64,000 nucleotides of DNA from contig SMSO01000007.1 of the NCBI GenBank assembly GCA_004764695.1, positions 1,054,001 through 1,118,000 on the forward strand, written 5' to 3'. The notes beneath the pieces were generated by a model. The model was not told the origin of the DNA. It made no database searches and saw only the letters and a program-made list of their open reading frames with translations. Origin of the DNA: Schizochytrium sp. TIO01 (taxonomy: Eukaryota > Protista > Bigyra: Labyrinthulomycetes). Below, in pieces: positions 5,733 through 60,138 of the stretch. The position numbers were made by a program, and so were the translations under genes. The first letter of the stretch is position 1. Each line of letters starts with the position of its first letter.

Positions 5733-5968
<236 letters not shown>

Positions 5969-14167: not shown

Positions 14168-16506
14168 TCAAAGTTCTCCACCCTTCCTCTGAGATGAATC
14201 ATTACTGCTATTGCTATTCTGAAGTCGACGGAGGGCAGTTAGACGCGCAGATCTACGACGCAGAGCAGCTTCAGCAAAGCGAGAAGAAGTACTGGCGCCA
14301 GCTACTGTATCAGTAGCAGATCGAGGTCTATCAGTTTCAGATTGAGCGCGGGGGAAATTCGGCTGCCTTCTTTTATTTCCAACGCGTCTAACTATAGGCG
14401 TCACACGCGTTAAAGTGGTGCGGTTACGAGTTCCTGCAGAAAAGAGGGATTCAGCTGGTTGTAAATCTTGAGCGCCATCGAGCAAAGACAGTGGTTGCGA
14501 AAAACTGAAATTAGGTCCCACGAGATCTTCTGTGAGCAGTGGAGTAATCCTTTCTAAGAGGCTGTCCCGAATGCTCTCAGAAACACTTGATTCCCAGTAG
14601 TTGCGCAAGCGATTTGCACGAAGCTTCTGCCAAGCAGCCTTGACCATTTCACGTTCTCCCTGAATGGTATCGAACATACCAAGCATATTATCTCGACGTG
14701 TAGAGTGCCGACCGCCGCACATTCCCGTGTGCATATGAATAGGACTATCTGGAATTGCGAGACACCAGGCACAAAACTCACAACCGCACACACATGTAAT
14801 GGCAGGACACCCAGAGAATTCATCGAAAACAAGTCCGCATCGAGGACAAAATATGCAAAGCATACGATTCTCGATGTAATGGACATGTTCATCCAGAGTG
14901 GAGGGTTGTTGATCTTCCAAAGTAATGTTGCGGCGATCTTGTTGATATCTGCGATAGTGGTTGTTTGTTCTGTCACGTTCGTTCATATGCATAGGACGTC
15001 TTCTGCGCGCTTCTATGCCAAGATGCATGGCAAGTCCATCCCCATGGTCGTATCTACCGTCACCAAGTCCCGCCAGAAATCCTGTATGAGGTATTATATG
15101 CTGACGTAATTGTTCGGCTAATCTGAGGGTAGTCGCATGGGATCTTTGAACCTCATCAAAAGTTTGTCTTTGCAAGGCATGCGAGCGCTGCTCTGCATCG
15201 TCAACGGCAAGAGATACAGTCAGATCTATGAAAGTCAACAGATTCTCACGAGGCAACACCATGACAATTCTATTCTTTGGTAGTCTCTCCTGACACATTT
15301 CTCCCAAACAGCGCATGCTGCCATGGAAGTCAAACTCAACATGTGTACCAGGCTGGTTTGCAACACGTAAAGCATGTCCAACGCAGTCCCCGCATGTGCG
15401 ATGGCCTCGACAACACGTCAGAGAGCAAGAGTCATCTGATTGTGTAAGACAGATTACGCACGTACGCGTACGTCCCGACGTTTCTCCTGGTTTCGATGCG
15501 AGGGCGCACGTTTGTCCTCGCAGCATTTGTCTTATTTGTAATAGTTTGATGCGTTCCCCAACAACATCTTCGCTGTTGTTCCTGTAACTATTCAACTGAA
15601 TAATTGATTCTAAACGTTGTTGTAAATCCTGATTGACACGATCAAGATCTAGTCTATGACTCGCTCGCAATTCTTGCACAAGTTAGTTTGAGATTCGAAT
15701 GTTGGATAGGCTAAGCGCTCAACTTACATGACAGTTCTCAGTGAGATCCCATGTTCCTCAATACTGTCAATCAGCTCTCGGGCTGCGCTTTCAGAGTACT
15801 TGTTTCCATTCAGTCTTTTTGAAGCAGATCATTAATTACATTTAATATATCCTGGTTAGCTGCAGCTGTTCATATGAGTTTTACGAAGACAATAGAAGGA
15901 ACGTACTGGAGTTCTGTTAGAAACATCAGTTGCGGAATAACAGATCTTATAGATTGCAGACCAGCATCACCAATCATGTTGTTATTAAGGCTATACTCAT
16001 CCGATCATTATTTGTTGTTAGTTTTTGTAAATGTAGTAGTCAGTTGGTAGGTACAATAGACTTACTTGATTACCTCAAAGAAAGCCTCTGCGTTCGAACG
16101 CAGGGCATTGCAGAGGCTTGCTGCGCCAGCATCAGTGATGCGATTACCTGACAAGCTAATTAAGACAACAAAGTGTATAATGAGATGTGAGTCAACGCCT
16201 CGTAAGAAGATCATTTGCCTTCGTAACAAGTTATTCATTGGCAGAAACTTACTTTATGAACTTGATCGCACGACTTGATGTAATCGCAGGAATGATTTTA
16301 TGAATATCCTCATCCGTGATATCTAAGTTTTGCAACCTGCACAGTTAGCTCGAAACAGTCACTAAGTTAGTCATATGTAGTGCACAAATTAGCTTTCAAC
16401 CTGTTTAAGGCCTAGTTCGCAATAACGCTGGGCCCTGAACGTACTGGAGCTCGTTGTAACCGTGCTGAAGGCCGTCTATGGCTTGTTGAATACGGGCTTG
16501 TGACAT
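14168..16506 (-). CDS. Spliced LRR(RI-type x4)-RING-RING2(Rcat-like) protein, putative RBR-related E3 ligase
   Basis: Exons (minus): 16506-16445 (MSQARIQQAIDGLQHGYNEL), 16336-16253 (84 nt, LQNLDITDEDIHKIIPAITSSRAIKFI), 16155-16066 (90 nt, LSGNRITDAGAASLCNALRSNAEAFFEVI), 15990-15907 (84 nt, LNNNMIGDAGLQSIRSVIPQLMFLTEL), 15814-15728 (87 nt, LNGNKYSESAARELIDSIEEHGISLRTV), 15653-14168. All introns GT-AG and phase 2. Last exon has RING CVIC..C..H..C..C and CPRC..FSGCPAITCVCGCEFCAWCL. Confidence 0.88.
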
Positions 16507-17181
16507 TGTTTCTGACGCTGCTTTGGAAACCTTGCAATCGCAGATGCGGGCGTTGTTGTTCGTCCTTCGGGAGCCGACTATTTGCAGTGCTTGCGTTCGT
16601 GCACAGTCAGTCGTCGTTGGCCGAGACGGTGCGCGTCTGAGAAAGTCTGCCTGAGGACTCTACCTTCGATTGGTTTCGGATTTGCTGAGCTTTCTTTCCC
16701 AGTTCTCAGCTTTCTCTGATTTTGGGCCTACTTATGAGTTTTCCTACTAGTATACTCCTTAGTTTACCTTCCTCTAGATGATACCTATAGAAGTGTTAAC
16801 ATTGGTTATTTTTAATTTCTAAAGAAAAGTAGTATTTAATGAAGGTACCTAGATACCTACGTATTAGTACTAGCACTTTTATGTCACCTCTGAGCTTTTT
16901 TCAAATTTTATTTTTTCAAATTTTATTTTTTAATATCCTGTATCATACATATGAGTTATATATGAATGTAAAGCAAGAAATAAATGTATATGATTGTTTT
17001 TAATCAATGTCAGAAGTAAATTAAAAAGTGTATTAATTATGCTACTATATAGGTTTCTTTTCTACTTTAAGAGTGCTAAAAAATTCGTGATCCTTGGCAG
17101 AGAATGAGGATCGAGGCAAATCGAAGCGCTCAGAGTACGTTGACCCTAGGGTAACCGCGGGGATTCTGATGTCGAGTTTGT

Positions 17182-17183
17182 GA

Positions 17184-17251
<68 letters not shown>

Positions 17252-17252
17252 A
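17182..17252 (+). repeat. (GAAA)n microsatellite
   Basis: Read directly from the sequence. Confidence 0.97.
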
Positions 17253-17477
17253 GACCTTATTAAAGGGCTAATATATACCCTAATATTAATTCGAAGCGGA
17301 TTGGGGTTTTTGATTTATTTTAATGGATAGATGTCATTCTATAATGCCTTCACCAACGCTCTGAGGGACACTTTTCTCACTCTCTCTCCTTTTCTCCTTT
17401 AAAAAACAAGGGCTCTCAGAGGCTGAATACTTTATTTATTATTAAAATTAATGTAGGTCCTACTAGCTCCAAACTAA

Positions 17478-17922
17478 CCTGCATATAGTTGTGTGTTGCA
17501 CCTATCCAAGCTTGGATGGGATATTACTAATAAGATAAGCTTTTCAGAAGAGGGGGTACATAAGGGTCTTGACGCATTATCACCGCAGGTAAAAGAACTC
17601 GCCTAGCACTGAGCAACATACATGTCTTGCCTGCATATAGTTGTGTGTTGCACCTATCCAAGCTTGGATGGGATATTACTAATAAGATAAGCTTTTCAGA
17701 AGAGGGGTACATAAGGGTCTTGACGCATTATCACCGCAGGTAAAAGAACTCGCCTAGCACTGATGTCTTGCCTGCATATAGTTGTGTGTTGCACCTATCC
17801 AAGCTTGGATGGGATATTACTAATAAGATAAGCTTTTCAGAAGAGGGGGTACATAAGGGTCTTGACGCATTATCACCGCAGGTAAAAGAACTCGCCTAGC
17901 ACTGAGCAACATACATGTCTTG
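17478..17922 (+). repeat. Tandem repeat, 3 copies of a ~152-bp unit (second copy 141 bp)
   Basis: Units start CCTGCATATAGTTGTG at 17478, 17630 and 17771; each contains the palindrome ATCCAAGCTTGGAT. Confidence 0.95.
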
Positions 17923-19611
17923 GTACAAAATAAAACAAGCACGGGGCAAGGAATATGGAGAAAATAATATGGTGAGCAGCTTTTGGTTAGGTGGCACACT
18001 TGTCCTCAGTCGGTTTTTAATATGCTGCAGCGGGTTTTATCTGAAACCTGCGATCTAGCGAGCTTGCACTACTAGTAGTAGATACCTCTAGAGGTACAGG
18101 TAACCATATTACTAGTATACTCTTAAAGGTGTGAAGTACACCCGTCCAAGTCTGGATGTTCATATAAAGTATAATGTAGGTACACTAGTAATGGGTCAGT
18201 ATGGAAATCTTTGCATTTGGGATAGCACGCAGCCATCCAAGCTTGGAGTAGTATGTTCTTCAAAATAGAAGTTTATACTATGAATCATGTTCCGCCCGCG
18301 TTCTCGGTTGCTTTCACTGAGAGTACATGTCTGGAATGACATATTATATGCAAGGATGGAAATACCATATACTCAGTTGAAGTCATCTGATGTAATTAAT
18401 TTTTTGACGTGTAATAAAAAACGGGACCTAAATAAAATTCCATCTCGAAAATTGGAAAAACTTGCTGAGCATCAGATTAGCTAAACTGGATTGGAATTGG
18501 TATCTTCTTGAGAAACAGCAGTAATCTCATTCTTGTTGCTGCACAACAACTGAGAGCTAAATAAAATAGCTAACATAGCATTCGTGGTAAATGCCGCAAT
18601 GGGAAACAGAAATTGTATTTTCCAGAGCTTGAAGTAGCAGTTTGAGAAGTATGGATCCAATTCACTGTGGACTACTACCAATTCAGATTAGAAAACGGTC
18701 TCATTAGTTTGAGATGAGTGTAAGTAACATCCAGTCTTGCAGATTGTGATATTTGTAATCACTCATCGAAATCAAAATCATGCATTCTCGTAATTTCCAT
18801 CTTCCAAGACCTAAAGCATGCAAACGCGAAAGCAAGAAGTATAACATAAGTGTATCTTTCCAACACTGTTGCCTTTACGATCTGAATGTTTTATAGAACA
18901 GAATTGTGTCTATGTCATCGATAAAACAGGTCACTAATCCTACGCATGTTCTGAGAATTAAGTATGTCTTTACTCGAGCCTTGACCTAAGCAAAACTATT
19001 CTAAACTCTTAGCGCTACCTATCAAAAGCAGAGAGGCATCTTAATTTCGCCAACCCTTCACAATTGCTTGGGTGGAGGTGGGAACTCATAAAAATAGGTC
19101 ACATTGCCTTTGATAGTCTATCATAAGTAGCGACATGTACTCAGCCATGAAATCGTTGATCTTCACATGTAAAAGGAACATGATATGAAAAATACCAGGT
19201 AGTAGTCCTAATAGCAGCTAACCTAGGCAACTAGTAATAGCAAAGGAGGCACAGAAACGGAGTCAAAACACTTTTGCTAGAGCAGAACAGGCAGTCGACA
19301 AAACACTGAGATAGCAACGAGCCCTATTCCTGTGTCGTCAACCCCTTCTCCCCCCCTTGCATATACTGGTGTATGGACTGGTATACGTCTCCCGTAGAAA
19401 GAAACCCGAGAAGGGCTGATAAATCTGCTGGTTTCGTTAAGCTCCGTTCGCGTCATAGAGGAAAGCAAAACTTGTGCGCGCAGATCAGGGAACAACTACA
19501 GAGAATCCGCCTCCAAAAACGTCTAGGGCAACCTTTTGCACGATAGCAACAGATACAACTGCCTCTATAGCGTACAAACAACAAGAGGAGCTATATCTAA
19601 GACTACTAAAA

Positions 19612-21003
19612 ATGGTCCGCGTAAATTCGCTTGGAGAGGCCCTCGAGGTTATTCATAACAAAAGTGCTGAAGAAGCAGTGTACGTTTTCCCTTTTTTCTT
19701 GTAATTTGGATTTTCGGATAGGGAAAGCTTCCTCTAAAATTATGGTAACAGTCTTCAATTTGTGGAACTTGACGTCGAGGAAATGCAAGAACTTGCATCG
19801 CTTCTTGAAAAGGAAAAATTATTGAAAAGCCTATGGTACGTTCTCTTTCTCGCACGTAGATGTCTCATCTAAGCAAACCAAAGCGGGTTCATTGATTTGT
19901 ATCATCGAGAATAAGCTAACTTTAAATTTATTGGAATATCACATCATAGCCTCTCCCATATCAGTATGGGTCCAGAAGGTGGGCGTGTGCTTGCAAATGC
20001 CCTAAAAGCGAACGCCTCCCTGGAAACACTAAACCGAGTTCCCTTTTGAGGTGTCTCACTACTGTGTGACAGCTAACCAAGTGATAATCAACGTGTATTG
20101 ATATGGTCTTTTTTAGATTATGGAGCAACGATCTCAGCCTGCGCGGCTTATGCGCAGTTGCTGACGTCTTGCGAGTGAATACTTCATTGAAACCCCTGAG
20201 GTAAGCAGAAGGCGATCGTGTATTCAGAGATTCGCATTCCTCAAATTGGCTACTCACTTGCCCTATGAAATATATGCGCTTACTCTACCACTTTCAGCAT
20301 TGCAGATGACCCTGTCTGTGCTGAAAGTGCAGTCGCACTTGCAAATGCATTGCGTGATAATACAACGCTGCAGTCTTTCGCGTAAGTTCAACTCCAGCGT
20401 GAAATGTGCAATAGCCCTTTACTTACTTTTCAAAACAGTGTTTGGAGCAACGAGCTTGGGGCCGAATCAGCAATCAAGATTGCTGAAGTCATACAGTTCA
20501 ATTCAGTCCTGATAGATTTAAAGTAAGTACTTGATGCCCCCTTGTTATTCTACGGATCACTAACAGTAGCCCATGTATGGTCTTTGATGTGTTCATCATG
20601 CAGCCTTTCCCGAGATGAGCCTTGGGCCCAGGGACGCAGAAGTCATTGCAGGAGCTTTTAAACTAGATAGATCTCTGCTCAGCCTTGAGTAAGTTTTATC
20701 GTGAAGGGATTTTGGGTTTTCCACCTGACTAACCCAAGACTAATCTCTATATGTCGCTCTTTATTTACTAGTATATCATGGAACAATATCGGCAACGAAG
20801 GCACCAATGAGCTTGCAAAAGCCTTGGCAGAAAACGCCTCGTTGAAGTCTTTACAAGGCGCATAGATGACTCTATTGAATTTTTGGCATGGGAAAATGCG
20901 CAAACTATTTGCTAACCTATTTATCGTACAATGGAATTACTTCGAGCGGCGGATGTGCTCTTGCACAGGCATTGCGGATTAATACAGGATCAGAAATTTT
21001 GGT
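19612..21003 (+). pseudogene. Degenerate LRR gene: start exon plus eight single-LRR exons
   Basis: Exon 19612-19679 (MVRVNSLGEALEVIHNKSAEEA), then LRR exons 19752-19835, 19950-20033 (donor CC instead of GT), 20117-20200 (LWSNDLSLRGLCAVADVLRVNTSLKPL), 20298-20381, 20439-20522, 20604-20688 (85 nt, frameshift), 20772-20855 (ISWNNIGNEGTNELAKALAENASLKSL, donor lost), 20920-21003 (acceptor lost). Confidence 0.85.
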
Positions 21004-21927
21004 GTACGTTTTGAGCAAGCACATATGCATGGTTGAATTCTCCTCATCACTTTGCGTGTCGTTGCTCTGTTTGATTCTACAAGCACTTTGAATAATAAAT
21101 TGCAGAGCTGTAGCCTTTTGCCTTTTGGAGATTGGTTGGGTCAACTTGTGGCAAATATATGGTTCTCTGTATAAAAGTCCGTCGATTTATTGCTAGTAGT
21201 AGATCTGAATATATGGCTTAGGAAAGTGAAGGAGGAAACCACTTTGTGAGGGTATAAATAAGCAGAAGAACCTGGCAGACTCATTACAGCGTCCTACAGT
21301 GGTTGGAATGCAAAAGCTTTTGGTCAGAGCTTGCTACTTATATATGTTCTATTGTGTAATATTACATAGACTAAAACAAAGATTATATCCTATTTCGAAG
21401 TAATGTTCAGCTAGGTGCCTTACCCTACCTCAATTTAAACTAACCTAACTCTACAGCCCGACACTCTTTGCCTCAACATGGTACATTCATCCTAGAACAT
21501 CAAGAACCAAGTCTCATCCTTTTTACTTTCACCTTCGTCGACAGGCTTCACTTCATTACTTCATCTGAGTTCGCCATTTTCTTGTCAGACTACCTATGTA
21601 CACTCTACTACACAAGCTAATATGCAATAACCTGTTAAAGAGTACGTAACGATTTCGGAGAAAGTGTTGTGTCTGTGATACTACACTGGTCCTACGTTTA
21701 ATGAAGTCCTTGTGCAAAATTAGAAAAGCGCAAAACTCCACAACCTTCGTGTCGTAGTGTCCAAAGATTGATGGGAGCGTGTGCGAGGAAGTTGCGTATC
21801 CCAGGCTCTCTGATGGTAGATTGGAGCAGCGATCAGATGCCCGAAAATATAAATTGGTTGCAAGGAGGTGTAAAGAAATGGAAACAAATCGCCAGATTTA
21901 GAGTTGCAGAGATTCGTTTATTTTTAA

Positions 21928-24900
21928 TTATTCCAATCTAAAATCTGCGCCGACAATATCTGGTGTTAGCAAAGGTGACAATAAGTCTTTCAAAACGAGT
22001 CGAAGATTTCTATCCTGAATTTGTGCATTCCAGTACTCACGCAGACGTTCTGCGCGGAGCAACTGCCACTCCTCACGAACCTGCTCAAATGAATCAGGGT
22101 AAAATATATCCTGCCCAAGTCTTCTTGAACAGGTTCTCACATGAGCATGGCAAACAACTTCATCCTGAGAACTATACCCAAGACACCAAGCGCAGAAGAG
22201 GTGTCCACAAGCATTATTACCACATTTTACAGCGCAGCAACCATCAAATTCGTGTACATAAGCCTTACAGTTCGGACAACATGTGCTCAAGATCTTCTCT
22301 TGAATATGCAGTAAATGCCGCCGTGCGTCACTATTTTGTTCTTCTGCACGTACAACTTCCGCTATGCGCCTTTGGATCTCTTTCTCAGCCCAAACTGCTG
22401 CCTCACTTTCTGCCTTCATCTTCGCAATCAACAAAAGATGAGTCAAGGCAGTTGATGCAAGACGGGTGATTTCTTGACCTGATATTTTCCCACTACATTC
22501 AGGTTTCATGCATGCCATTGTTCCATCAGCATCCACTCTGACGTTAGCAAGTGGTTGTGCCGCCGCTTCTACTGCAGATTCGATACAGCCTCTGCAAAGG
22601 AAGTCCCCCTCCTCGCAGCTCGTGCCCTCAGAAAGCCGATGCTTCTCGAAACATACAAGACATTCCTTGAGAGGGTTTTCAGGAGCTCCAAAAGCTTCAT
22701 GTTGGAGTGCTTGGCGAGCGCTTGGACGTTGACTTGGGTCTGTCGCGGTAAGAGCCTCGATAAGTGTCTGCATTGCAGCAGTCCGTTCAGTGGGATACAA
22801 CTCTTTTAAGCTTATGCCCACAGAGTACATGTCCATTGCTGTTTCAAACCTATGTACAGGCCCATTCTGCAACTCAGGGGCAATGTACCGTGGCGTTGCC
22901 TGAAGTGATGTGTATGTTGCAGTGTAGTTTGCAACCTTGATGCCGTCAAAGTCACCGATCAATGGTGTTATGTTGCTTGTGAGGAAAATGTTTTCTGGTT
23001 TGATGTCACAATGCACAATGCCGTGGGCATGTAAATCCGCCACACCGACAAGCAGGCCCACAGCAAGTCGGTCACGTGCTTCTTTGCCTTCGTTAGGATG
23101 ACTCTCAATCCACTTGGCAAGGTCACCTTGCTCGTAGAAAGGCATGACAATACAACCACGTGGCTCTCCATTAGAGGTATCCACAAAAGCACCAGTGATA
23201 CGTATCACGTGATGAGACTCCACTTTGCCCAGATTGGCAACTTGTTTGTAGAAAGTTTTAGATTGACTTAGATGCCCAAGCTGAAACTCTTTGAGAACCA
23301 TAGTTTTTCCAACGTTGTCAAGAACCTTTTGGACTTTCTTGCCACCTCTAAAGGATAGGGGCTCACCGACACGCTGAAAGTCCGAAACTGTCACATTCGT
23401 CAACCAAAGGTCAGAACATGCTACTTCAAAAACACCCTCTGCAGCTACGTGAAGCTTTTCTAGCCAAGCTCTATCCTGCAACAACTCAGGATAATGTTCC
23501 TGCGCGTGTTGCAGAGTTTCAGCAAGCTTATGACGAAAAACTTTGCTAAGCTCGATAGGGTTGCCTTTAGAGAGATTGCGCTTCTGTTTCTTGATTCGAT
23601 TTCTAAAGAGCTTTCGTTCTTCCTCATCCAAGTCCTCAGCGTCGACATCTTCTCTAGCTCTTTTTAATCTCTCTGTCGCTTTCCTCGACTTGTCAAGTTT
23701 CTGGTATAATTTCTCAACATCTAAGACGGAAGGTTCTTTCAAACCCAGTAATGCATAGTCATACAGTTCAGAGAGCTCTTTGGATGTGCACTTGCTCGCT
23801 TCATTTAACACAGTGTTTTCACAGTATGATTCGAAACGAGCGAATGTTGAACTTATTGCGCAAAGTATCTTAGATAAGTGGGCACTAAGTGTATCTCCTT
23901 GTAGCACTTCAATCTCTTCTTGAAGAGCACGCTCAAGCTCAGATAATTCGGGCCCGAGATTCATGGCCTGCTCAGGTATCCTAAGAGCAACCCATAATCC
24001 ATCACCAAGTTCTAGCTCAGACAATCGAGAGACGACGCATTTTGCAGCTTGTTGGCTTCGTTCGCCAATGTTGTTTGGTCGGCCATCTCCATTTCTCTTG
24101 TATCCTTCGACGCATTGGACAGCCCGAGCAACAAGTTCTTGGCAGTGTTTGAAGTCATCTGTGCTGGTCTCTTCAGTAACCGGTGCAAGGTCGATCTTTA
24201 AATCGTGTACCAAACTTTCAATTCTCATTTTGAAATCGCGGACTACATCCTCATCACTTTCGCAGAGGTTTGCGCGAACCCATGGGTACACGACCTGCAT
24301 AAGTGAACGTAGGCGGTCTCGTTCAGCATTCCGCTTTTCGATGAGACTGGGCAAGTCATTTGCAGAGCTTGCACGAATCTGGCCTTGTAGTGCATCAAGA
24401 CACTGTTTGGAGTTCTTGATGTCAGCGGAGACCTGTCGCAACTTCACTTGGCCAAAGTAGCCCTGGATCGCCGGTCCTACGAATATCTCAAGCAAGGCAA
24501 TCCCAGTCTGCAAGGAATTTCCTCTGACCCCGCCTCGGTCCGCGCGCAAGTCCGAGACTTTCTTGGCAAGCTGCACCACATCAGCGAAACTCACGCTCGC
24601 TCCATCCGGCCGTTCTCTGAGGCGAACAAGAAGACGTAAGTAAACGAGCAAAACGATGGTGAAGCAGCAGCAAAAGCAGAAGCAAAAGTTAGTATCCCCT
24701 ACATCTTAATAACACAATTCGTGAAATGAATGATTACACGATCCCAAACAAAGATTAACCGCATGAACTTACCCGAATCCATCCAAAGTAGCAAGCCCGG
24801 CGTCATTAATGCCATCTTGCTCGTTCTTGGGCTCTGCAGAAGGGTCGTTCTCTCTGCAAACACAGGGATCGGTGTCTGAAGAGGAATCGGCAATGTCGTC

Positions 24901-25675
24901 TCCAGGAGGACATACCGTTTCGAACAATTCTTTAGGGGTTCCAGAAAAATTGTCATAGCTGCATTTTGTAAACGAATGAACGAATGAAAGAGAATAAAAG
25001 CGCTTGTTAGAAAAACGATGAACGCATCTAAAGACGGCCTCGCAAGTCCATGGAGACACGGAGACAACCATAGAAGGCAAGGCTCTGCGCAAGCTGGGAA
25101 TAGCAGCACAGGGAACGGAACTTACTAGATTGCAACAGAAGGACATGCTTTGTGCAGATACTTTGCGACGGCTTTTGCGCCCTCTGAGCCAATGTTGTTA
25201 CTATAAAGACTGTGAGTATAAATAAATCATTTTTGTTCATTCGTTGTCAGGAAAGATAGCTCCAGTCAGTGATTCGGTTGATCCCCTTTTCTTTTCTATT
25301 ACAAAATGTTGCCTCATTAAAATAATCACCTCTCCTTCTGCTGCTGCCTATCTTATTCTATAGATATACTGCGGAATAGATTTCCTTCTTCTCTTTCTAA
25401 AAAAGAAAAGAGTTCTTTGCCTTTCTAAACTACCCAACTACGTAGGTAGTGTACGAGCAGTGCTTTCCTTTTTTTTTTTTCTAAACCCTACTAAAAGACC
25501 AACCACTCAAAAGAAAGTAAGATAGAAAGAAAAAGAGGGACCGTAGTACTACCTATTATATAGCTTTCCGTGGATGATTCCACAAACGTACACCAACGTT
25601 TGAAGGTTATTGCAACCTTCGAGTGCCTTTGCGACGGCCTTTGCGCCCTCATTGCTAATGTTGTTGTCTCCAATA
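21928..25675 (-). CDS. Spliced LRR-coiled-coil-Ser/Thr kinase-RING-RING2(Rcat-like) protein; no start exon found nearby
   Basis: Exons (minus): 25675-25592 (LRR IGDNNISNEGAKAVAKALEGCNNLQTL), 25209-25126 (LRR LYSNNIGSEGAKAVAKYLHKACPSVAI), 24958-24773, 24616-21928; all phase-2 GT-AG joins keep the frame. Kinase: VLKEF, HCDIKPENIF, GDFDG, YIAPE, DMYSVG. C-terminus: CLVC RING and CPNC..FDGCCAVKC..C..FCAWCL. Confidence 0.88.
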
Positions 25676-26028
25676 CTGTGAGTATAAATAAATCATTTTT
25701 GTTCATTAGTTGTCAGGAAAGACAGCTCCAGTCAGTGATTTGGTTGATTCCCTTTTCTTTTCTATTTCAAAATGTTGCCTCATAGAAAGTAATCACCTCT
25801 TCTTCGGCTGCTGTCTATCTAATTCTATAGAGATACTACTGAATAGATTTCCTGTTGTCCTTCCTTCTTCTCTTTAAAGAAGAAAAAGAAAAGAAAAGTT
25901 CATCTCCTTTCTAAATTACCCAACAACGTAGGTAGTACGAGCAGTGCTTTCGTTTTGATTCTGAACCCTACTAAAACACCGACCACTCAAATGAAAGTAA
26001 GATAGAGAGAAAAAGAGGAACCGTAGTA
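25126..26028 (-). repeat. Two tandem ~466-bp units, each an 84-nt LRR exon plus a conserved intron
   Basis: Introns 25210-25591 and 25676-26028 align along their length; similarity stops abruptly after CCGTAGTA at 26028. Confidence 0.92.
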
Positions 26029-26544: not shown

Positions 26545-28599
26545 TTACTGTTTACGTTCTAGTTCTTTCTGGAGGTAGCTGATTTCCCATTCAGCCCACT
26601 TTGCAAAGTCATCAGGATCCATATCCTCCTTAAATTCAGCCTCACCAAAGCCGATAAACATTGGCTTCTTGCCTTTCTCATGATTGCACATAATATTGCG
26701 CCGATCTATATCGCCATGTAAAATCCCAAGTGAGTGAATCGACTTGAGAGCGGCTACCGCCTCTTCCTTAAACTTATCCGTAAGGTCGTCATCTGTAACG
26801 TGCTCGCCTGCAAAACTTAAACCAAGCCCGTACATGAACCCATCTTCAAACAATCCAAGACCAAGAAACTCTGGTACACACTTGCCTTGAAGCGGAAGCA
26901 AGGAATCGTAAACGATAGCTTCGAACCTGAGATGATCGACCAAATACGATTCCTTGAAAGTATCGAGCAACTTTAGTACAGCATCTACATCACCTTTGGT
27001 TGCATGCGGAATTTTACAGCGGGAGATTGTTCCCGGATCACCTTCCCAACGAAACGAGCCAAGGAACTCTTCGTCTTTCAGTTGGTGCAAAGATGTCCAA
27101 TCAGACCGAGGTGGGATTTTTTTATCTGGAGAGGGGGGAAACCCGTAGAACTCTGTGTCAGGTACTTCGAGACTAAAGACATCATCGTCATCGTTGATGT
27201 CCTGGTTAATTTCCTTGTAAACATCGTTTTCAGCCTTGCAGCGCCTGGGTAGCTGTTCATGTCTACACTCACTAGAGCAGGGCGTAAGGAGCGCCCCTTC
27301 GCTGTTTGTAAATTCTGGTACGCGGTTCTCTTTTGCGATCATAATACCCAGTGCTAGAAGCTGTGCTGCACTTAGACTGTTTCTGTCAATATCCCCCACG
27401 GCATCACATTTAACAGATGGTGTAATTAGCAGATTGCCAGCGCAATCACGAAAGAACAGAGCTGTATCGAAGTAGTTCGAGTAGATACCTACTAGAGATT
27501 TGTTGAACAACATCCAAGTGTACAATTTACGAATCACTGAGAACCTCGAATGACGTTGTGACGTGCAATCGACATCACGACAGTCATGATTGCAGTATTC
27601 ATCAGAAAGATCAACGTGATGGAATTCAGGTCTTTCAAGTGCACCAATGACCCAAGGTTTAAATTGATTCACATAGGGTTCTAAACCAATTGCAAAATCC
27701 ACTGGGCCCCATGTTTCGGTGTAGTCTCCAAAACGGTGGTTTGATGTCTTAGGCACTTGCTCAATTCCTCCGTCTTTAAGAATGTCAAGTACTGCTCCCA
27801 AGAGAAAAGACATATGTGGGATTATTGAAGATGCACCTGCGGTACTTATATCCTTGAGGTACTGTATTGAGGATTCTAGCGAAATCGTGGTTCGGCTTGC
27901 CTGTAAAGTTTCGATGTACCCAGCATCACGACAGTAGTTTAGTAAAGTTTTCATCTCCAATTTACGAACATGCATGGGTGACGCATGGTTTTCAGAAGTA
28001 TCAGTGGAGCACTTTACTTGTAACTCTTTACGAGGCAACTGGGGAGTTGCACTGGAGAGTGCCTGGAATACTGAGCTTTTATTATTATGAAAGGAATTAT
28101 ATGCAGCCTCGCTCCTACGAATTCCATAGAGGCTCTCATACATGTCCGTTTCGTTTGTTATTATTTCCTTCTGAATGTACCTGAGTCTTATATCGAGACG
28201 CGCACCTCTTTTCTCGGCGCGTCGAATCTGCGAGCATAAGTCCATTGCAGATTCCAAACATTCTCTTTCAAGTCTGGAGTGCTCTTCAGGTTGCTCTTCC
28301 ATATCTTTCTTAGTTCCGGACCGTTCAGAACGCAGCTCGCTTCGGGTGAGCGCACAGTCTTCATTGGGGGGATTCTCCAGAATTCTCTTCTTAAGTCTTG
28401 CAATATCTTTTGTACAGGATATGCGTTTGGCCTTTAGGTTCTCGAACTTTGCGACATCGCTAGAATGCACAGATATCGAATGTCTTAAGAAAGGGTCTTC
28501 GGCATACGACACTTTTGAGCTAGCGGAGCGTGTATTCACACGCCCTACCCAGGTCCTGGGCAATGGGGGGGGCGAGCTGATTGTGACAAACCGCCTCAT
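26545..28599 (-). CDS. Crinkler-type REase-fold plus atypical kinase effector with degenerate catalytic motifs
   Basis: Paralog of 31089-33665: VDFAIG..GALER..SVIRKLYTWM..VGIYSNY..FFRD; kinase FEAIVYDSLLPLQGKCVPEFLG, IHSLGILHGDIDRRNIM, and FIGFG where the paralog has FIDFS. Confidence 0.75.
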   Translation of the reverse strand: MRRFVTISSPPPLPRTWVGRVNTRSASSKVSYAEDPFLRHSISVHSSDVAKFENLKAKRISCTKDIARLKKRILENPPNEDCALTRSELRSERSGTKKDMEEQPEEHSRLERECLESAMDLCSQIRRAEKRGARLDIRLRYIQKEIITNETDMYESLYGIRRSEAAYNSFHNNKSSVFQALSSATPQLPRKELQVKCSTDTSENHASPMHVRKLEMKTLLNYCRDAGYIETLQASRTTISLESSIQYLKDISTAGASSIIPHMSFLLGAVLDILKDGGIEQVPKTSNHRFGDYTETWGPVDFAIGLEPYVNQFKPWVIGALERPEFHHVDLSDEYCNHDCRDVDCTSQRHSRFSVIRKLYTWMLFNKSLVGIYSNYFDTALFFRDCAGNLLITPSVKCDAVGDIDRNSLSAAQLLALGIMIAKENRVPEFTNSEGALLTPCSSECRHEQLPRRCKAENDVYKEINQDINDDDDVFSLEVPDTEFYGFPPSPDKKIPPRSDWTSLHQLKDEEFLGSFRWEGDPGTISRCKIPHATKGDVDAVLKLLDTFKESYLVDHLRFEAIVYDSLLPLQGKCVPEFLGLGLFEDGFMYGLGLSFAGEHVTDDDLTDKFKEEAVAALKSIHSLGILHGDIDRRNIMCNHEKGKKPMFIGFGEAEFKEDMDPDDFAKWAEWEISYLQKELERKQ

Positions 28600-31088: not shown

Positions 31089-33665
31089 ATGGCTCTGCGC
31101 CCCGAGAAGCCGTCGAATCTCGTACGGAGACCTTCAACGAGGTCTATCGTTGGTGCTTTTGAGAGAGTGTTGACTGTTTCTCGGAATTTGCAAGAGAAAA
31201 CTGGTGAATTGGCTTCGAAATTGAAAGTCTCGAGGCACGAAATTCGACCTTCCATTAATCCTTCCTTGGCCCTGGCCATTGATGCTGCAGTGAGAGGAGA
31301 CGAAAAAGCACAGAAGATTGTACGAGAGAGTGAATCCAAAGTTCCTCTGTGTCAGAAAAGGGCGGTCGCGGCGTACACAGCCGCAAGCCACTCTCTCTTT
31401 CGTGTCCTTGCAGACACTGCAGCACTGGAGGAAACAAAGACAGAGTGTGCACTCTTAGTCTCTCAGGCACTCTCCCTTTTCCAAGTTGTTGAAGGTAAGC
31501 AAAACCCGAACACGATTGATAGGCCGTCCATTAGTGAAATCGTTAAGAGTGTGAAAGGGCTTGAAACGAGGCAAGAAGAAGAAGAAGAAGAAGAAGAAGA
31601 AAAGGAGAAAGCAATGCCCTTTCCTCGTCTCTCAAGAAAGAAAGCCAAGCACGGCTTGTCTGCGCCCCTTCACGCGAAAGGGGACGGGACCACTCGGGAT
31701 CAACGTGTTCGAAAGGCGGGAGGCGGAGACGGAATGGCGAGCAACCGACTTAGCACGAGCAGTCGCTCATCGCAGCGAACTGACAACGCGGGGATGCTTA
31801 ACCGACTTGCCCTCTATCATGACCGTCTAAAAACTGAACAAGCTAGACTTCGAGAACTTGAAAAAGATTTGAAAGAGCTGAAAAAGGAGCTACCTGACGG
31901 TGCTGCTCTTGTCCTTGATGATGTTTTAAATGGGGACGTTCCGTTTAAGAATGCAAGAAAAGACGTGAAGGAAAATACGAATTTAGAGGATCGAGAAAGG
32001 GTTCTTTTTCTTGACGCTCTGCGCATAGCATCTGATATGAAGGAAGCCCGAGCTAAAATCGAGAAAACCGAGGGAAAGATTGAGGAATTTGAGTCTGGAG
32101 GCGGTGAAGAAGGAGAAAGCAATTGGCACTTCTCCGGATCAGTTTGGGAATCCCTTGGGTGCGCTTTACCTGAAATTACTCACGATCCTTCTTTACCCGT
32201 ATCAAACACGAATATCTCAAATACGGATAACTATCCTTTTGCCCCGAAGACTGTCCAGGGGATTGACTGGGATAATTTCATGGCATACTGCGCAGATAAA
32301 GGATATTTGGAAAAACTTCAGCAAGAATCAACTAATGAAAGTGTTGGTGATTTACTTGAGAGGTCAATGCGCTCTCTTTATATAAAGTCTGAGAGTTCCG
32401 TTGGACTTTGTTTTTCACAAGTTTTCCAAGCAGTCATCTCTACTCTAGACTTCATTCCAAAAAACCTCCGCTACACGTCTGACAAGTCCTCGACGGGTGG
32501 TCTTCGACCAGATTTTATTATTGGTACCGTCAGAGATGGGGTTACAGTACCTATAAATCCCTTGCTTGTGGGTGAACTGAAGAGTTACAGTTCAGATTCT
32601 GAACCATTTTATTTCCGTTGGTGTGAAAGGAATGGACATGACCCTGAACAATGCCCTAATCGTGCTCATTCTGAGAGGCACACGAATGTGTCCCCAATTA
32701 GACAGTTGTATAACTACATGGTCGACTCTGGCAAGTTTGTTGGTGTTTACTCCCACTATGGCTGTACTGCGGCATTCTTCCGTGACTGTAAAGGCACTCT
32801 TGTTACAACACCGATGCTCCCTGACGACTCTGCTCCAATGAGCGTGCCACAGTTGCTCGCCTTGGTTATCATGATTGCCATGTCTGAGGAGGTGCCGGAA
32901 TTTTACGACGGTAAAAGGCCCATTTTGGTGCCATGCGAAGGTACAAGAAGTTGCAAAGGTGTCAATCATCCCCATACCAGTCTACCTGATGACTGTAAGT
33001 GGGCAGAGGACGATCTCAAGCGTAGCGCTAAACCTAGAACAGGAGCCACTGCAACGAGAAGGGCGGCGAACAAGTCCCTTTACAAAAAGCATGACACTCC
33101 CATCACCTGGGATGATCTCTACAACTGCAAGTACATTTCTGACTGCTACACAGGTAACGCAGTTGAGTGTGAGATCATGGGCGAGCGAGCAGTGGTTAAA
33201 TACAACGATTTCGGCGATCACGAAGATGCTGATGAGCGTCTTGACCAGATTGATTTTGAAGCTGAAGTCTACGCAAACTTGTCTGACTTGCAGGGGGATT
33301 GTATTCCCAAATACCTGGGCCATGGCTCCATTACCGATACTGATGGATCCCAGTATGGTTTTGCTACCTCTTATGCAGGTGAGGCACTCTCGTATGAATC
33401 TCTTGATTCTCTCACTGAAGAGTTCAAGGCAAGCGTCAAGGATGCCCTAGACAAGATACACGCGCGTGGTGTTTTACATGGCGACCTGAGACTTCCGAAC
33501 ATCCTGAAGTCGAAGGACGATCCCGAGAAGGCAGTTTTTATCGACTTCAGTCATTCAGGGATCTATGACGACCCTGATGATCAGTTCTTTCAAGACCACG
33601 CAAGGCTTGAGAAGGAGAACCTCGTCAAGCTCTTGAAAGGCGAAAAAATCAAACAAGTTTTTTGA
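31089..33665 (+). CDS. Crinkler-type PD-(D/E)xK nuclease plus atypical kinase effector (alternative start 31614)
   Basis: Coiled coil; RPDFIIG..VGELKS..PIRQLYNYM..GVYSHY; kinase AVVK, FEAEVYANLSDLQGDCIPKYLG, IHARGVLHGDLRLPNIL, VFIDFSHS. Confidence 0.8.
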   Translation: MALRPEKPSNLVRRPSTRSIVGAFERVLTVSRNLQEKTGELASKLKVSRHEIRPSINPSLALAIDAAVRGDEKAQKIVRESESKVPLCQKRAVAAYTAASHSLFRVLADTAALEETKTECALLVSQALSLFQVVEGKQNPNTIDRPSISEIVKSVKGLETRQEEEEEEEEEKEKAMPFPRLSRKKAKHGLSAPLHAKGDGTTRDQRVRKAGGGDGMASNRLSTSSRSSQRTDNAGMLNRLALYHDRLKTEQARLRELEKDLKELKKELPDGAALVLDDVLNGDVPFKNARKDVKENTNLEDRERVLFLDALRIASDMKEARAKIEKTEGKIEEFESGGGEEGESNWHFSGSVWESLGCALPEITHDPSLPVSNTNISNTDNYPFAPKTVQGIDWDNFMAYCADKGYLEKLQQESTNESVGDLLERSMRSLYIKSESSVGLCFSQVFQAVISTLDFIPKNLRYTSDKSSTGGLRPDFIIGTVRDGVTVPINPLLVGELKSYSSDSEPFYFRWCERNGHDPEQCPNRAHSERHTNVSPIRQLYNYMVDSGKFVGVYSHYGCTAAFFRDCKGTLVTTPMLPDDSAPMSVPQLLALVIMIAMSEEVPEFYDGKRPILVPCEGTRSCKGVNHPHTSLPDDCKWAEDDLKRSAKPRTGATATRRAANKSLYKKHDTPITWDDLYNCKYISDCYTGNAVECEIMGERAVVKYNDFGDHEDADERLDQIDFEAEVYANLSDLQGDCIPKYLGHGSITDTDGSQYGFATSYAGEALSYESLDSLTEEFKASVKDALDKIHARGVLHGDLRLPNILKSKDDPEKAVFIDFSHSGIYDDPDDQFFQDHARLEKENLVKLLKGEKIKQVF

Positions 33666-39410: not shown

Positions 39411-39645
39411 CGTGTTTGCTTGTTTGTTTGTTTGTTTGTTTGTTTGTTTGTTTGTTTGTTTGTTTGTTTGTTTTTCCTAGTTTTTCTACAAACTCCTTCT
39501 CCTTTTCTTCTTAGGGTAGATAATTTGGCAAGGTGATTATTCTTTCTAAAAACTTTTTTTTCTTACTTCTTTTCTTTGTTATGGAACCTAGCTAAGTTGC
39601 ATTGAAATGAATGAATGAGTGACGAGGGAGATCTTAGGAGATCAC

Positions 39646-40101
39646 TTAAGCGGTCTTGTTTTCAATGATCACTCTTTCCTGGGAGAAAGGCGAGTCGTTG
39701 CCTCTATACAGCATCTTGCGAATGGTCTTTTCATCGAGAAGACCAGGGTAAGCTGCAATTGTGACCTGCAAATCATCGGAATATTCAATCATTTTCAGAT
39801 CCTCAAGGAGTTCTTGTACAAAACTCTCGTCATCCAGGCCTATCCAGATCTTTTTGACTCTAGGGAGTTCGTAGACCCCCTCGAAAAATTCTTTGATACC
39901 CGCATCATACGAAAGTTCACCTGAGTAAAGGCGGTTCCTAAAGATCAGCATTTCTTCACATTCCATCATCCTCCCCACGTTCTGCCGGAAAAGTCCTTCG
40001 GGGTAACCACCGTACTTGTTGAGCTTGAACCCTTCGTCACCAATTTGGAATGAAAAGATAGGTTGGCTGAAGCTTCCGCCTTGAAGAACATGATAAACCA
40101 T
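39646..40101 (-). CDS. Tandem paralog family copy 4 (151 aa, unknown function)
   Basis: Intact ORF; paralog of the three adjacent copies. Confidence 0.8.
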   Translation of the reverse strand: MVYHVLQGGSFSQPIFSFQIGDEGFKLNKYGGYPEGLFRQNVGRMMECEEMLIFRNRLYSGELSYDAGIKEFFEGVYELPRVKKIWIGLDDESFVQELLEDLKMIEYSDDLQVTIAAYPGLLDEKTIRKMLYRGNDSPFSQERVIIENKTA

Positions 40102-40104
40102 CGC

Positions 40105-40592
40105 GTTTGCTTGTTTGTTTGTTTGTTTGTTTGTTTGTTTGTTTGTTTGTTTGTTTGTTTGTTTGTTTGTTTGTTTGTTTGTTTGTTTGTTTGTTTGTTT
40201 GTTTGTTTGTTTGTTTGTTTGTTTGTTTGTTTGTTTGTTTGTTTGTTTGTTTGTTTGTTTGTTTGTTTGTTTGTTTGTTTGTTTGTTTGTTTGTTTGTTT
40301 GTTTGTTTGTTTGTTTGTTTGTTTGTTTGTTTGTTTGTTTGTTTGTTTGTTTGTTTGTTTGTTTGTTTGTTTGTTTGTTTGTTTGTTTGTTTGTTTGTTT
40401 GTTTGTTTGTTTGTTTGTTTGTTTGTTTGTTTGTTTGTTTGTTTGTTTGTTTGTTTGTTTGTTTGTTTGTTTGTTTGTTTGTTTGTTTGTTTGTTTGTTT
40501 GTTTGTTTGTTTGTTTGTTTGTTTGTTTGTTTGTTTGTTTGTTTGTTTGTTTGTTTGTTTGTTTGTTTGTTTGTTTGTTTGTTCGTTTGTTT
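40105..40592 (+). repeat. (GTTT)n microsatellite, ~120 units
   Basis: Near-perfect run immediately upstream of the copy-4 ATG. Confidence 0.98.
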
Positions 40593-57400: not shown

Positions 57401-59231
57401 TCTTCTCAAGGTTACACCCTGTTCGGGTTTACCATCAAGGCTTCGTCAAGGTGAACTATCGCAATCCTTCAATCTTGCAGTGCAGAAGATCATTGAGGAA
57501 GGAGAAAGCTCGATGCAACAAAATGAATCAGTTCAAGGTAGTAACACCACTACTGAGATCTTCCAAGAACAAACAATTGTTACTACTAGAACTTATATGC
57601 GCCAAGTTTCTCATTCAAAGGAAGGTGAAGCAGATGGAAACAGAGGTATTACACATGAGCGTAGTGCAAACATCAGTATCGGGTCAGTCAACCCGAATGA
57701 AGACATTCATTCTGCCACGTTAGATACTAATAAAGCTGTGCCTATGATTAGTACAAGTATCAATCAGCCAGAGAGTGGAGATATAGGTCCACAGCTGGAC
57801 ACCCCTCAACAAGATGACGAGCATGTTCAGAATGTGGATGAGTCTGAGCTCAATATTATCGATAACCTTCAAACTACTATCGATGGAGAAGCCAGCGATA
57901 TTCAAGATGATAATCCGACTAGTACGCGTGAATGGGTGCTTAAGTTGAATCCAGAACTGTTTGATGCAGTGAGACAAGCGCCTAAGAGTGGAACAGGTCG
58001 TATCAAATGGCCATTTGTTTATGCCCAGTGGAGACGCATAGGGCTTCCAGTCCACATGAATACTAGCGTATATCACTCCTATAACAATTCTCTTAAGTTT
58101 AAACGCAAGAGAGATGCTCAAAAAAATAAAAATAGTCTGCGAAACGCCGTGATTCGCGCAGACAGTGATTCTAGGATCCACGAAAATATGTCTTGCTCAA
58201 TCCACAGAGAAGAAACACTCAGAATTAACAACTCGACTGATTTGGAGGAGGGATTGGAACCTCTAGTAGCTCTTTCTAACATAGTTCCTCCCGCTCCTGA
58301 TAATGAAATTGATAATAGTTTGATTTCTCAAAATACAAATAAGAAGATAAATGCGCCTGTACCACCTGGAAAAAGAAGAAAACTCAGGAAAACAGCTTCG
58401 GCATCTTCTAGTAGTAGCGAAAAGGAAGATAGTACACAGGATCAACCACCTTCTCAACCTCAGAGAAATTTACATACAGAAAAGCCTGGTTATCAAAATC
58501 TATCAATTCCAGAAAATGCTATAACTTCACAGATTTTGGGCCAGGTGCAGCAACAAAAAAGCAATAGTGTGAATATAAATGAGAGGGAAGATCTTGCTTC
58601 TCTCCAAAGTCTAGATGTGAGCGATGCGGATAATGAAAGAAATGGAAATGAAGATGTACAGGATGCTGATTTGAACAAAAATATACTTAGAAGGTCTCGA
58701 AGATTGTATGTATTAAGTTCAAAAGAAGACAGAACCTCTGCTACTCCCAAATCAGACGTGATTGAAAATCAAGAGCGTCGTATCGCCAGCACAAGCTCTG
58801 CACAAGGTACAAGAGATGGCGGCGACGTACAGAAGCACAAGCAGCAAATTGTTAAAACCTGTTGTACGCTTGGTGCTAAAGTGAAAAAGCTTTCTCAACA
58901 ACTAACTTTGGAGAGCATTGCACGCTGCGAAACGGAACTCCAAACACAAGCAAGCGCAACCAGTACTACACGTCAGTTCCTTCAATTTACGGAGGATGAA
59001 GATCAGCTCATAAAACATATCTGGGGTTGCGAACAAATTTTGATACGGCCCCAACAAGGGAGAAATACCACTATTAAATGGGGACCTTTTCAAAAACGTT
59101 GGTTATATTTAGTTGCTGTTCTAAAGCTCAGCAAAGAAGGTGACAATTACAATGTTTGTAACCGCGAGCAGTTGAGACAGCGCATGAAGTACATCAATCC
59201 AAATCCAAAACAACGAAAAAGAAGAAAATAA
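54480..59231 (+). mobile_element. DDE transposase, Dada-superfamily-like (1583 aa)
   Basis: CPTC..YKC..C zinc finger; KIAADHHH (first D), MNERQQI, CLDKCC (second D), ILDNAHLISRY (DxxH), RGTNQLENFWRHL (E); C-terminal Trp-spaced Myb-like helical repeats and a basic NLS-like end. Element ends not resolved. Confidence 0.68.
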
Positions 59232-59594: not shown

Positions 59595-60115
59595 GTACCC
59601 AACTACGTAAACTACTTAGGTAGTGTACCAGCAGTACTACAAACACCAAGCACTAAAAAGAAAGAAAGAAAAAGCTTGGTCCTGACTATTACGATAGCTT
59701 TCCCTCGTGGATGATTCCACAAACGTACTCTAAAGATTGAAGGTTCTTGCATCCCTCGAGTGCCTTTGCGACGGCCTTTGCGCCCTCCGAGCCAATGTTG
59801 TTCCAACCAAGACTGTGAGTAAAAATGAATAAGTTTGTTTTGTTCATTCGTTGTCAGGATAGACAGCTCCAGTCAGTTGATCCTGTTTTGTTTTGTCTTT
59901 CTGCACAATAAAAAGCAATCACTTCTTCTTCTGCTGTTGTGCTGCCTATCAAATTATATAGATTTCCTTTTGCGCGTCCTTGTTTTCTTTCTAAAAAAGA
60001 AAAGAGTTCTTTGCCTTTCTAAAGTACCCAACTACGTAAACTACTTAGGTAGTGTACCAGCAGTGCTTTCGTTTTGATTCCTTTCCCCTACTACAAACAC
60101 CAACCACAAGAAAGA
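59595..60115 (-). other. Isolated LRR exon cassette (84-nt exon 59812-59729 with flanking intron), homologous to the 25.1-26.0 kb units
   Basis: CTCACAG|T CTT GGT TGG AAC AAC ATT...TTA GA|GTACGT encodes LGWNNIGSEGAKAVAKALEGCKNLQSL; the intron flanks align to 25210-25591. Confidence 0.92.
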
Positions 60116-60138
60116 AAGAAAGAAAGAAAGAAAACTTA

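Follow-up and report, generated by a model that had tools for sequence, protein, structure and literature searches.

Single-repeat exon cassettes in a putative LRR-kinase-E3 sensor family of the thraustochytrid Schizochytrium sp. TIO01

What kind of gene system is encoded by short, evenly spaced exons that each carry a single leucine-rich repeat (LRR) and that lead into kinase and ubiquitin-ligase domains? The question is raised by a window of 64,000 nucleotides (nt) from Schizochytrium sp. TIO01 (assembly GCA_004764695.1, contig SMSO01000007.1, positions 1,054,001 to 1,118,000), the whole stretch of DNA analysed here, in which three neighbouring loci, A, B and C, occupy positions 14168 to 26028 and an orphan cassette lies further downstream. 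An earlier note, made from the sequence alone, had described these loci as a modular family in which a variable LRR array is coupled to phosphorylation and ubiquitination, and all three loci and the orphan were found where that note had placed them, as phase-2 single-repeat exons mostly of 84 nt (one is 90 and one 85 nt long). We consider it probable, with some reserve, that loci A, B and C belong to a large family of sensor-like cytosolic proteins that is evolving fast in this thraustochytrid and in which an LRR array is combined with a predicted kinase and E3 module. At the sequence level a diversifying sensor family is well supported, and the family, with a putative function in immunity or elsewhere, resembles a recognition repertoire.

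Members of the family were called by comparing the C-terminal 270 residues of locus C with the organism's own 64-Mb genome. There are 103 E3-module matches, about 50 of which have open frames of 875-973 codons (a typical effector exon has ~925 codons) and more than 12 of which are fragments. Many of them sit either less than 100 kb from the end of a contig, on a contig that is itself small, or in a cluster of about six genes spanning 170 kb. A genome-wide hunt for the LRR exons had also been proposed in the earlier note, and a first-look search returned at least 410 candidates. The canonical gene, as seen in 14 close paralogues, begins with a 53-nt start exon that encodes no signal peptide and continues with 3 to at least 15 LRR exons in units of about 425 base pairs (bp). 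It ends with a linker exon and a single large exon, the effector exon, which encodes an all-alpha domain followed by a Ser/Thr kinase of the non-RD class and by an E3 module of the RING-between-RING (RBR) type that lacks the in-between-RING (IBR) domain.

The arrangement of one LRR per 84-nt exon recurs in 122 exons of 15 paralogues, with AG/GT splice sites and an open frame kept in 110 of the 122, and this recurrence of the cassette pattern is far beyond chance. These exons share a 28-residue period and the consensus LxxLxLxxN, which identifies the repeats as ribonuclease-inhibitor (RI) type, or LRR_6-type. The exon-plus-intron period is ~425 bp (419-431 bp) and is 321 or ~175 bp in older paralogues. 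Arrays at 15 loci contain 2, 3, 3, 6, 6, 6, 6, 8, 8, 8, 10 and 11 LRR exons, with at least 15 in each of three others, so that the modularity proposed for the family is borne out by a range of 2 to at least 15 cassettes between paralogues. The hallmarks of one-repeat-per-exon genes are all present: fixed exon length, symmetric phase, an exon number that varies between paralogues, and hypervariability of the binding face. Because all of the introns are in phase 2, units can be gained, lost and exchanged with the reading frame intact.

Variation among the cassettes is confined to a small part of each unit. In an alignment of 106 exon-plus-intron units, nucleotide diversity is close to 0 throughout the 338-nt intron and a 63-nt exon core and reaches 0.4-0.7 at exon nucleotides 5-10, 23-25 and 73-84. 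Intron identity is 0.974 within arrays and 0.956 between paralogues, exon core identity is 0.973 and 0.963, and identity at the variable sites is 0.54 and 0.46, respectively; the effector exon is 0.908 identical between paralogues. Since introns and exon cores are more alike than the effector exon, the arrays are homogenised across chromosomes at all but ~21 nt per exon. These ~21 variable nucleotides encode codons 2, 3, 25 and 26 and the split junction codon, which correspond to the x positions of L-x-x-L-x-L-x-x-N; in all LRR structures these positions form the solvent-exposed concave face. The predicted binding-face codons are thus hypervariable, in keeping with the diversification that the earlier note had proposed. 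Codons 2, 3, 26 and the junction codon each specify 11-14 residue types, codon 25 mainly Q or T, and codon 8 is dimorphic (S or D); two of the binding-face positions have a principal two-way split, with further variants that are rare. Within exons, a Fisher test shows no significant association between the S/D and Q/T dimorphisms (P 0.135). Most of the variable residues are S, G, N, Q, T, E, Y, R, K, W or H, with more than 90% being polar, charged, aromatic or Gly, and 95 exons yield 85 distinct peptides. The distance at four-fold sites of the core is 0.025, compared with 0.65 at the first and second positions of the variable codons, and stops are depleted at variable codons, with 1 observed and 14 expected (Poisson P 1.3e-5).

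The variants recur as multi-nucleotide haplotypes in new combinations. The 3' variable segment has 36 haplotypes, many of them recurrent, that fall into two main lineages with linked synonymous differences, and a recent 1.3-kb duplicate differs from its partner at one intron base and at five of the eight bases of one variable patch. We read this pattern as a probable reassortment of old variable half-cassettes by recombination and conversion within the constant scaffold, with selection keeping the binding face diverse. A different process would be targeted mutation of the variable codons, by site-directed hypermutation or templated patch repair, possibly somatic, in place of selection on germline variants. 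Such a process would accommodate both the 5-of-8-base patch in the recent duplicate and the 20-fold greater divergence of the patches relative to flanking neutral sites, which extends to synonymous sites within the patches. We nevertheless give it very little credence, as recurrent haplotypes are common to different units, two main lineages are evident in the 3' patch and the S/D and Q/T dimorphisms differ at 3 bases, all of which fits reassorted old alleles better than fresh mutation, and neither a mutational bias nor a template repeat was seen.

Some of the junctions predicted in the earlier note have support in transcripts. Splicing of the locus C intron at 24617-24772 shows in each of three RNA-like public runs but is missing from a DNA-like run. 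Read depth in the LRR exon bin exceeds that of the neighbouring intron bins 10- to 100-fold in the RNA-like runs, whereas in the DNA-like run introns are as deep as exons. The junction between the last LRR exon and the linker of a paralogue was seen in runs X5 and X9. The strongest transcript evidence for the family is the complete public protein P0043 (from an MMETSP0960 transcript, 1,240 aa), which maps exon by exon to the divergent paralogue L018 with a single residue differing, and thus reproduces the design: a start exon, eleven 84-nt LRR exons separated by phase-2 introns of ~85-105 nt, and an effector exon. Pfam recognises LRR_6 (E 1.4e-33) and Pkinase in P0043. We note that the MMETSP headers of P0193 and P0199 give TAXON_ID 87120, which in NCBI is a basidiomycete, while Aurantiochytrium limacinum is 87102; a digit transposition is probable.

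The effector exon is under purifying selection. Its ratio of nonsynonymous to synonymous divergence (dN/dS) is ~0.3 against paralogues, with dS of 0.08-0.15 between paralogues, and for locus C it is 0.32 against the copy on C24. The kinase of locus C matches Pfam Pkinase at E 2.1e-29, and 20 of the 21 paralogue effector exons examined retain the motifs MVLK (with the beta-3 Lys), HCDIKPEN (non-RD) and DFD, L020 being the one without them; the protein has the features of a eukaryotic protein kinase and is predicted to be one. A protein atlas search returned generic kinase clusters only. For the all-alpha domain of ~430 residues that precedes the kinase, fold searches gave nothing specific (Foldseek E>=0.14; VIA Z<=8.9, at helical-bundle background). 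The best Foldseek matches of this domain are ClyA-type pore-forming toxins at E 0.14-0.5, and neither a fold nor a role in cell death is claimed for it.

The C-terminal E3 module has 17 Cys/His residues that never vary, among them the Rcat Cys that corresponds to the catalytic one. RING1 has the pattern C-x2-C-x11-C-x3-[H/D]-x2-C-x2-C...C-x4-C, in which every Cys is invariant; at the alternative position, older paralogues and locus A have His and the main clade has Asp. Profile matches to the RINGs of TRAF6 and RNF4 are weak. A profile of the paralogues searched against PDB has the RING2 of ARIH1 (1wd2) as its best match, at E 0.001 and with the Cys residues in exact register. An AlphaFold2 (AF2) model of the module has a predicted local distance difference test (pLDDT) score of 85, and its top Foldseek hits are all RBR ligases: RNF216 (E 1e-4), ARIH1/2, HOIL-1 and parkin. 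There is no IBR: the segment from RING1 to Rcat contains neither Cys nor His, Pfam IBR gives no match, and the AF2 model has a single helix of ~53 residues (residues 98-150) in its place. The catalytic His of RBR ligases, two residues after the active Cys, is Ala in 13 of 13 aligned sequences. The kinase and the RING1 and Rcat modules are therefore present as the earlier note had stated; its 'RING-RING2' is better described as an RBR-type RING1, a long helix and an Rcat without IBR, which by fold and Cys register is a predicted ligase.

This module makes up a separate, widespread clade; 1,778 sequence clusters match the E3-module profile at E<=1e-10. It lies behind ANK repeats and a kinase in Hondaea fermentalgiana, and elsewhere behind WD40 repeats and a kinase, behind a kinase alone (the dinoflagellate Durusdinium), or behind DEAD or UPF1-like helicases (for example in Pythium). 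The public proteins sampled were P0045, P0060, P0058, P0064, P0130 and P0144, and Pfam IBR matches none of them; the module seems to be common yet to lack an annotation of its own. A third architecture is represented by P0040/P0199 (MMETSP0958), a complete 603-aa protein in which ten diverged RI-type LRRs are joined directly to the E3 module with neither alpha domain nor kinase; the P0040 transcriptome bears the same taxon number as that of P0043. Association with so many N-terminal domains, the attachment of LRRs to an E3 module as in substrate-recognising ligases, and purifying selection on the effector would all be natural if these proteins were ordinary substrate adaptors of an expanded E3 family, comparable to F-box-LRR proteins, with endogenous targets and a diversity due to relaxed or lineage-specific regulation. 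That explanation strikes us as quite improbable, for it accounts neither for near-saturated variation limited to five binding-face positions on a homogenised scaffold nor for the clustering near contig ends.

No Pfam NTPase domain of the NACHT or NB-ARC type was found, so the proteins do not qualify as NLR/STAND proteins, and the effector exon has no Pfam match to Ras/Roc or COR that would place it among the ROCO proteins. The domain content bears on a further explanation, that the family is an allorecognition system governing self/non-self discrimination in fusion or mating compatibility, its variable LRR faces binding polymorphic conspecific proteins in the manner of fungal HET/NWD NLRs. The sequence signature is indeed like that of Podospora nwd/hnwd genes, whose near-identical repeats evolve in concert and are hypervariable at a few surface codons (PMC1805685, PMC2873952). 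The family has neither a NOD nor a known cell-death domain, however, and we think allorecognition an unlikely role.

The genomic setting of the arrays connects them with published chromosome-end repeats. At the main-clade loci L002, L003, L006, L007, L010 and L013 the first LRR exon has, ~1.5 kb upstream and in matching orientation, a 5S rRNA gene (Rfam 95-97 bits), and 5S genes are also found near the locus-A copies L023 and L024; the window itself contains none. This proximity ties the family to a chromosome-end architecture that bears ribosomal DNA (rDNA). In the telomere-to-telomere study of Aurantiochytrium limacinum, subtelomeric rDNA is interspersed with LORE-TEARS, of which Group 5 consists of ~5 units of ~421 bp between consecutive 5S genes; the elements are said there to lack GenBank similarity and are discussed as spacers. 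By description, the LRR arrays (units of 419-431 bp, 2 to at least 15 copies, near 5S genes) fit Group 5 LORE-TEARS in unit size, copy number and position. The same fit, together with the defects of copies B and C in the window, would be expected if the ~425-bp arrays were structural subtelomeric repeats of the LORE-TEARS kind, their coding appearance incidental or residual and the family largely pseudogenic. That possibility seems to us very remote in view of the splice sites and open frames of 110 of 122 exons, the depletion of stops at variable codons (P 1.3e-5), the codon- and structure-specific nature of the variation, the enrichment of exons over introns in RNA-like runs, and the ~50 intact effector exons with dN/dS of ~0.3.

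We also offer, tentatively and as a proposal that we ourselves regard as doubtful, a more extensive reading of the family: that the near-invariant ~340-nt introns and 63-nt exon cores are a selected recombination scaffold, that ectopic exchange between chromosome ends reshuffles a stock of variable half-cassettes and so produces a germline combinatorial repertoire of cytosolic LRR-kinase-E3 sensors, a NOD-less counterpart of fungal NLRs, and that the arrays are LORE-TEARS, which would make the subtelomeres of this protist, with its persistent mirusvirus infection, a nursery for recognition genes.

For the sensor family itself, the mechanism that we favour would run as follows. Ectopic recombination and gene conversion in the constant scaffold would reshuffle pre-existing variable half-cassettes, and selection would preserve the diversity of the LRR binding face; the LRR surface would bind a variable ligand, perhaps a viral, microbial or non-self protein, and binding would release the activity of the kinase, of the ubiquitin ligase or of both, directed at the ligand itself or at a partner in signalling. 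Several observations weigh against this interpretation. Synonymous sites in the 3' variable segment vary too, leaving no clean dN>dS signal, and the variability, while it fits old haplotypes kept by selection, could stem from a local mutational process. With Ala replacing the Rcat His, no IBR, and Asp in the RING1 of the main clade, the ligase chemistry may differ or be lost. Full-length main-clade transcripts are not seen in short-read contigs, which break in the repeats, and that the homogenised arrays are translated is deduced from their splicing and their scarcity of stops. The Aurantiochytrium literature (the telomere-to-telomere study and a 2025 mirusvirus paper) makes no mention of LRR genes. 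Finally, the locus B of the window is decaying and its locus C has no start exon.

Locus A, which encodes an LRR-E3 protein with no kinase, consists of the following features.

16445-16506, minus strand: start exon, 62 nt, with ATG
16253-16336 (84 nt), 16066-16155 (90 nt) and 15907-15990 (84 nt), minus strand: three full LRR exons
15728-15787, minus strand: cap exon, 60 nt
14168-15659, minus strand: last exon, 1,492 nt, encoding a helical linker, RING1, Rcat and C-terminal helices, with the stop at 14168
15293-15460, minus strand: RING1, by its Cys/His pattern
14717-14848, minus strand: Rcat, by its Cys/His pattern

Every acceptor in locus A is AG, every donor GT and every intron in phase 2, and a phase-2 acceptor at 15660/15659 puts the last exon back in the frame of its open reading frame (ORF). 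In a frame check of the joined exons only, the frame is open over 623 codons. It is also stop-free in the copies on C14 and C24 and in a further C14 copy; of the five copies, three combine an open frame with a start codon, that on C24 carries ATA instead of ATG, and one is frameshifted. The ORF has no Pfam match at E<=0.01, the E3 module being recognised through the paralogue profile and the fold search, and this module matches that of locus C (BLASTP E 1e-21). Judged by its frame and splice sites, locus A looks intact and functional.

Locus B lies head-to-head with locus A and is an LRR-only array.

19612-19679, plus strand: start exon (exon 1)
19752-19835, 19950-20033, 20117-20200, 20298-20381, 20439-20522, 20604-20688 and 20772-20855, plus strand: LRR exons, six of 84 nt and one of 85 nt
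20920-21003, plus strand: dead ninth exon, decayed

The donor after 20033 is CC instead of GT and there is no donor after 20855; both defects are common to the C14 copy. Exon 7 is 85 nt long through a +1 frameshift at 20622 that is found only in the window, the exon being 84 nt in the 99%-identical C14 copy. Substitutions between the two copies number 12 in exons and 10 in non-exons, which is an equal density. B-type splice joints 20381>20439 and 20688>20772 are present in RNA-like runs, with single-nucleotide polymorphisms that fit the C14 copy better than the window copy. We regard locus B as a pseudogene-like decaying array and would view it as a transcribed pseudogene.

Locus C and the orphan unit are made up as follows.

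25592-25675 and 25132-25215, minus strand: LRR exons, 84 nt each, in two tandem ~450-bp intron-plus-exon units (25126-26028)
24773-24958, minus strand: linker exon of 186 nt with phase-2 boundaries on either side and an open frame; its homologue in paralogue L008 is that gene's only linker exon
21928-24616, minus strand: effector exon, ~2.7 kb, encoding the all-alpha domain (~430 aa), kinase, RING1, long helix and Rcat
22795-23334, minus strand: kinase, non-RD, with HCDIKPEN at 22990-23013
22495-22662, minus strand: RING1, by RBR evidence
22129-22278, minus strand: Rcat, by RBR evidence
59610-60134, minus strand: orphan LRR unit, exon at 59729-59812, with AG/GTACGT, an open frame and flanking intron homology of 82-93%

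All introns of locus C are in phase 2. Its array starts mid-intron at ~26028, the paralogue contigs diverging at 26023-26026, and no exon 1 or intron 1 sequence was found anywhere in the window. For these two reasons locus C is taken to be a 5'-truncated copy which, as far as its sequence can tell, has lost most of its array and kept its effector exon intact. The whole A-B-C block is a segmental duplication, with copies on C14 (99% identical) and C24 (96-97%). A direct repeat of ~150 bp (17478-17629 and 17771-17922, in the region 17530-18005) lies between loci A and B and is duplicated in the C14, C24 and C31 copies too. Window introns are short GT..AG introns, often with a CTAAC branch site. 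Searched singly, the LRR exons of the window score below threshold against LRR_6 (E 3.5e-4 to 0.46) because each holds a part-repeat, with the beta-strand split between two exons; the orphan exon has the best single-exon score among them. The tally of 14 LRR exons given in the earlier note comes near to the 3 in A, 7-8 in B and 2 in C, with the reservation that two B donors are broken and one B exon is 85 nt long; the copies in the window are poor examples of the family, B being pseudogene-like and C 5'-truncated, with A looking intact.

That note had further called the position beside a virus-like segment suggestive, though no evidence of function, and the comparisons do not show such a link: ten ORFs at 26-52 kb match no viral family in Pfam or PHROGs, with no PHROGs match at all and almost no Pfam match, although this is weak evidence since PHROGs covers phages only. 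Among them, the ORFs at 26545-28599 (minus strand) and 31089-33665 (plus strand) have only weak kinase-like (C-lobe) or APH-like matches. A DUF6729 (transposase-like) ORF of 1,583 codons at 54480-59231 (plus strand) ends ~400 bp before the orphan LRR unit. A transposon as general driver of the family was rejected, as this ORF has two full copies plus fragments, none of them systematically near family members. Elsewhere in the window are microsatellites with a 4-nt period (CAAA/GTTT-like, ~1.1 kb at 39420-40582) and an 8-nt period (~230 bp at 5736-5968), which produce ladders of BLAST hits; two tRNA genes at 123-195 and 464-536, 340 bp apart and with identical Rfam scores, likely a tandem duplicate; and a P450 sharing 71% identity with a protein from the thraustochytrid Hondaea. 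This P450, the one-residue difference of P0043 and the arrangement of 5S genes and subtelomeres together place the organism most likely in, or very near, Aurantiochytrium limacinum.

To our knowledge, hardly anything has been learned about innate recognition in free-living heterotrophic protists, and the family described here would provide a very large and concrete candidate recognition system, with a predicted ligand surface and two predicted enzymatic outputs. Aurantiochytrium is culturable and carries persistent mirusviruses, and it has been genetically modified, knockout strains being listed in the A. limacinum genome preprint. Should the arrays be identical with the subtelomeric spacers already published, the architecture of chromosome ends in Aurantiochytrium would have to be reinterpreted as coding. 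The widespread IBR-less RING1-Rcat module, with Ala for the catalytic His and missed by Pfam IBR in the members tested, is of interest for ubiquitin biochemistry in its own right.

A literature search found no publication describing an LRR-kinase-E3 cassette architecture, in agreement with the earlier note, which had not recognised it as described. The design principle is not new, since one-repeat-per-exon phase-2 LRR arrays have already been published in Tetrahymena and Ectocarpus; what is new is the lineage and the sensor-kinase-E3 architecture. The LRR-ROCO candidate receptors of Ectocarpus and its NB-ARC-TPR candidates (Zambounis et al. 2012, PMC3341825; PMC11378527) share with the present family fixed-length one-repeat exons, shuffling, a variable repeat number, a cytosolic signalling output and a host that is a stramenopile; a further likeness is the diversifying selection that acts on the concave side of the LRRs in the LRR-ROCO genes. 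The Ectocarpus exons, however, are 72 nt long and encode a 24-residue plant-type LRR, as against 84 nt and RI-type here; the output is a ROC-COR GTPase (with or without a kinase) in place of a kinase and RBR E3; and the extreme intron homogenisation seen here is not reported. The LRR genes of Tetrahymena (Xiong et al. 2019, PMC6564038) have tandem exons of a single length, more than 96% phase-2 introns and a split 'junction' codon; their young copies are similar at the nucleotide level, they are enriched in subtelomeric and pericentromeric regions, some are fused to protein kinases, and an LRR exon-plus-intron unit lies beside a mobile element there too. They differ in having 90-bp exons, in belonging to a ciliate, in numbering thousands and in having no described E3 module, nor is a contrast between five hypervariable codons and an invariant scaffold described for them.

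The fungal NLRs (Podospora nwd/hnwd, het-e/het-d; PMC1805685, PMC2873952, PMC4986451) are alike in their near-identical tandem repeats, concerted evolution, few hypervariable surface positions and unstable repeat number, and in placing interchangeable sensor repeats on one effector chassis, as do the WD40 and ANK versions of the present module. Their WD40, ANK or TPR repeats are in single exons, whereas the LRRs here are separated by conserved introns, and their NACHT or NB-ARC switch is absent from the present family. With the RBR ligases (ARIH1/HHARI, RNF216, HOIL-1 and parkin) the module shares a RING1 ending in C-x4-C and an Rcat of the form CPxC-x9-C*-x4-C-x4-C-x4-C-x2-C in register with ARIH1 RING2, and differs in having the ~53-residue helix instead of an IBR and Ala instead of His after the catalytic Cys. 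A variable recognition domain fused straight to a ubiquitin ligase is also found in LRSAM1, in the bacterial IpaH/NEL effectors and in TRIM5alpha, and the recognition surface of TRIM5 is under positive selection; these proteins differ in their E3 chemistry and domain order and have no kinase and no cassette exons. Set beside Ectocarpus and Tetrahymena, the thraustochytrid family would represent a third, independent origin of the one-LRR-per-symmetric-exon design, and strengthens the view that this design is a general route to rapid receptor diversification.

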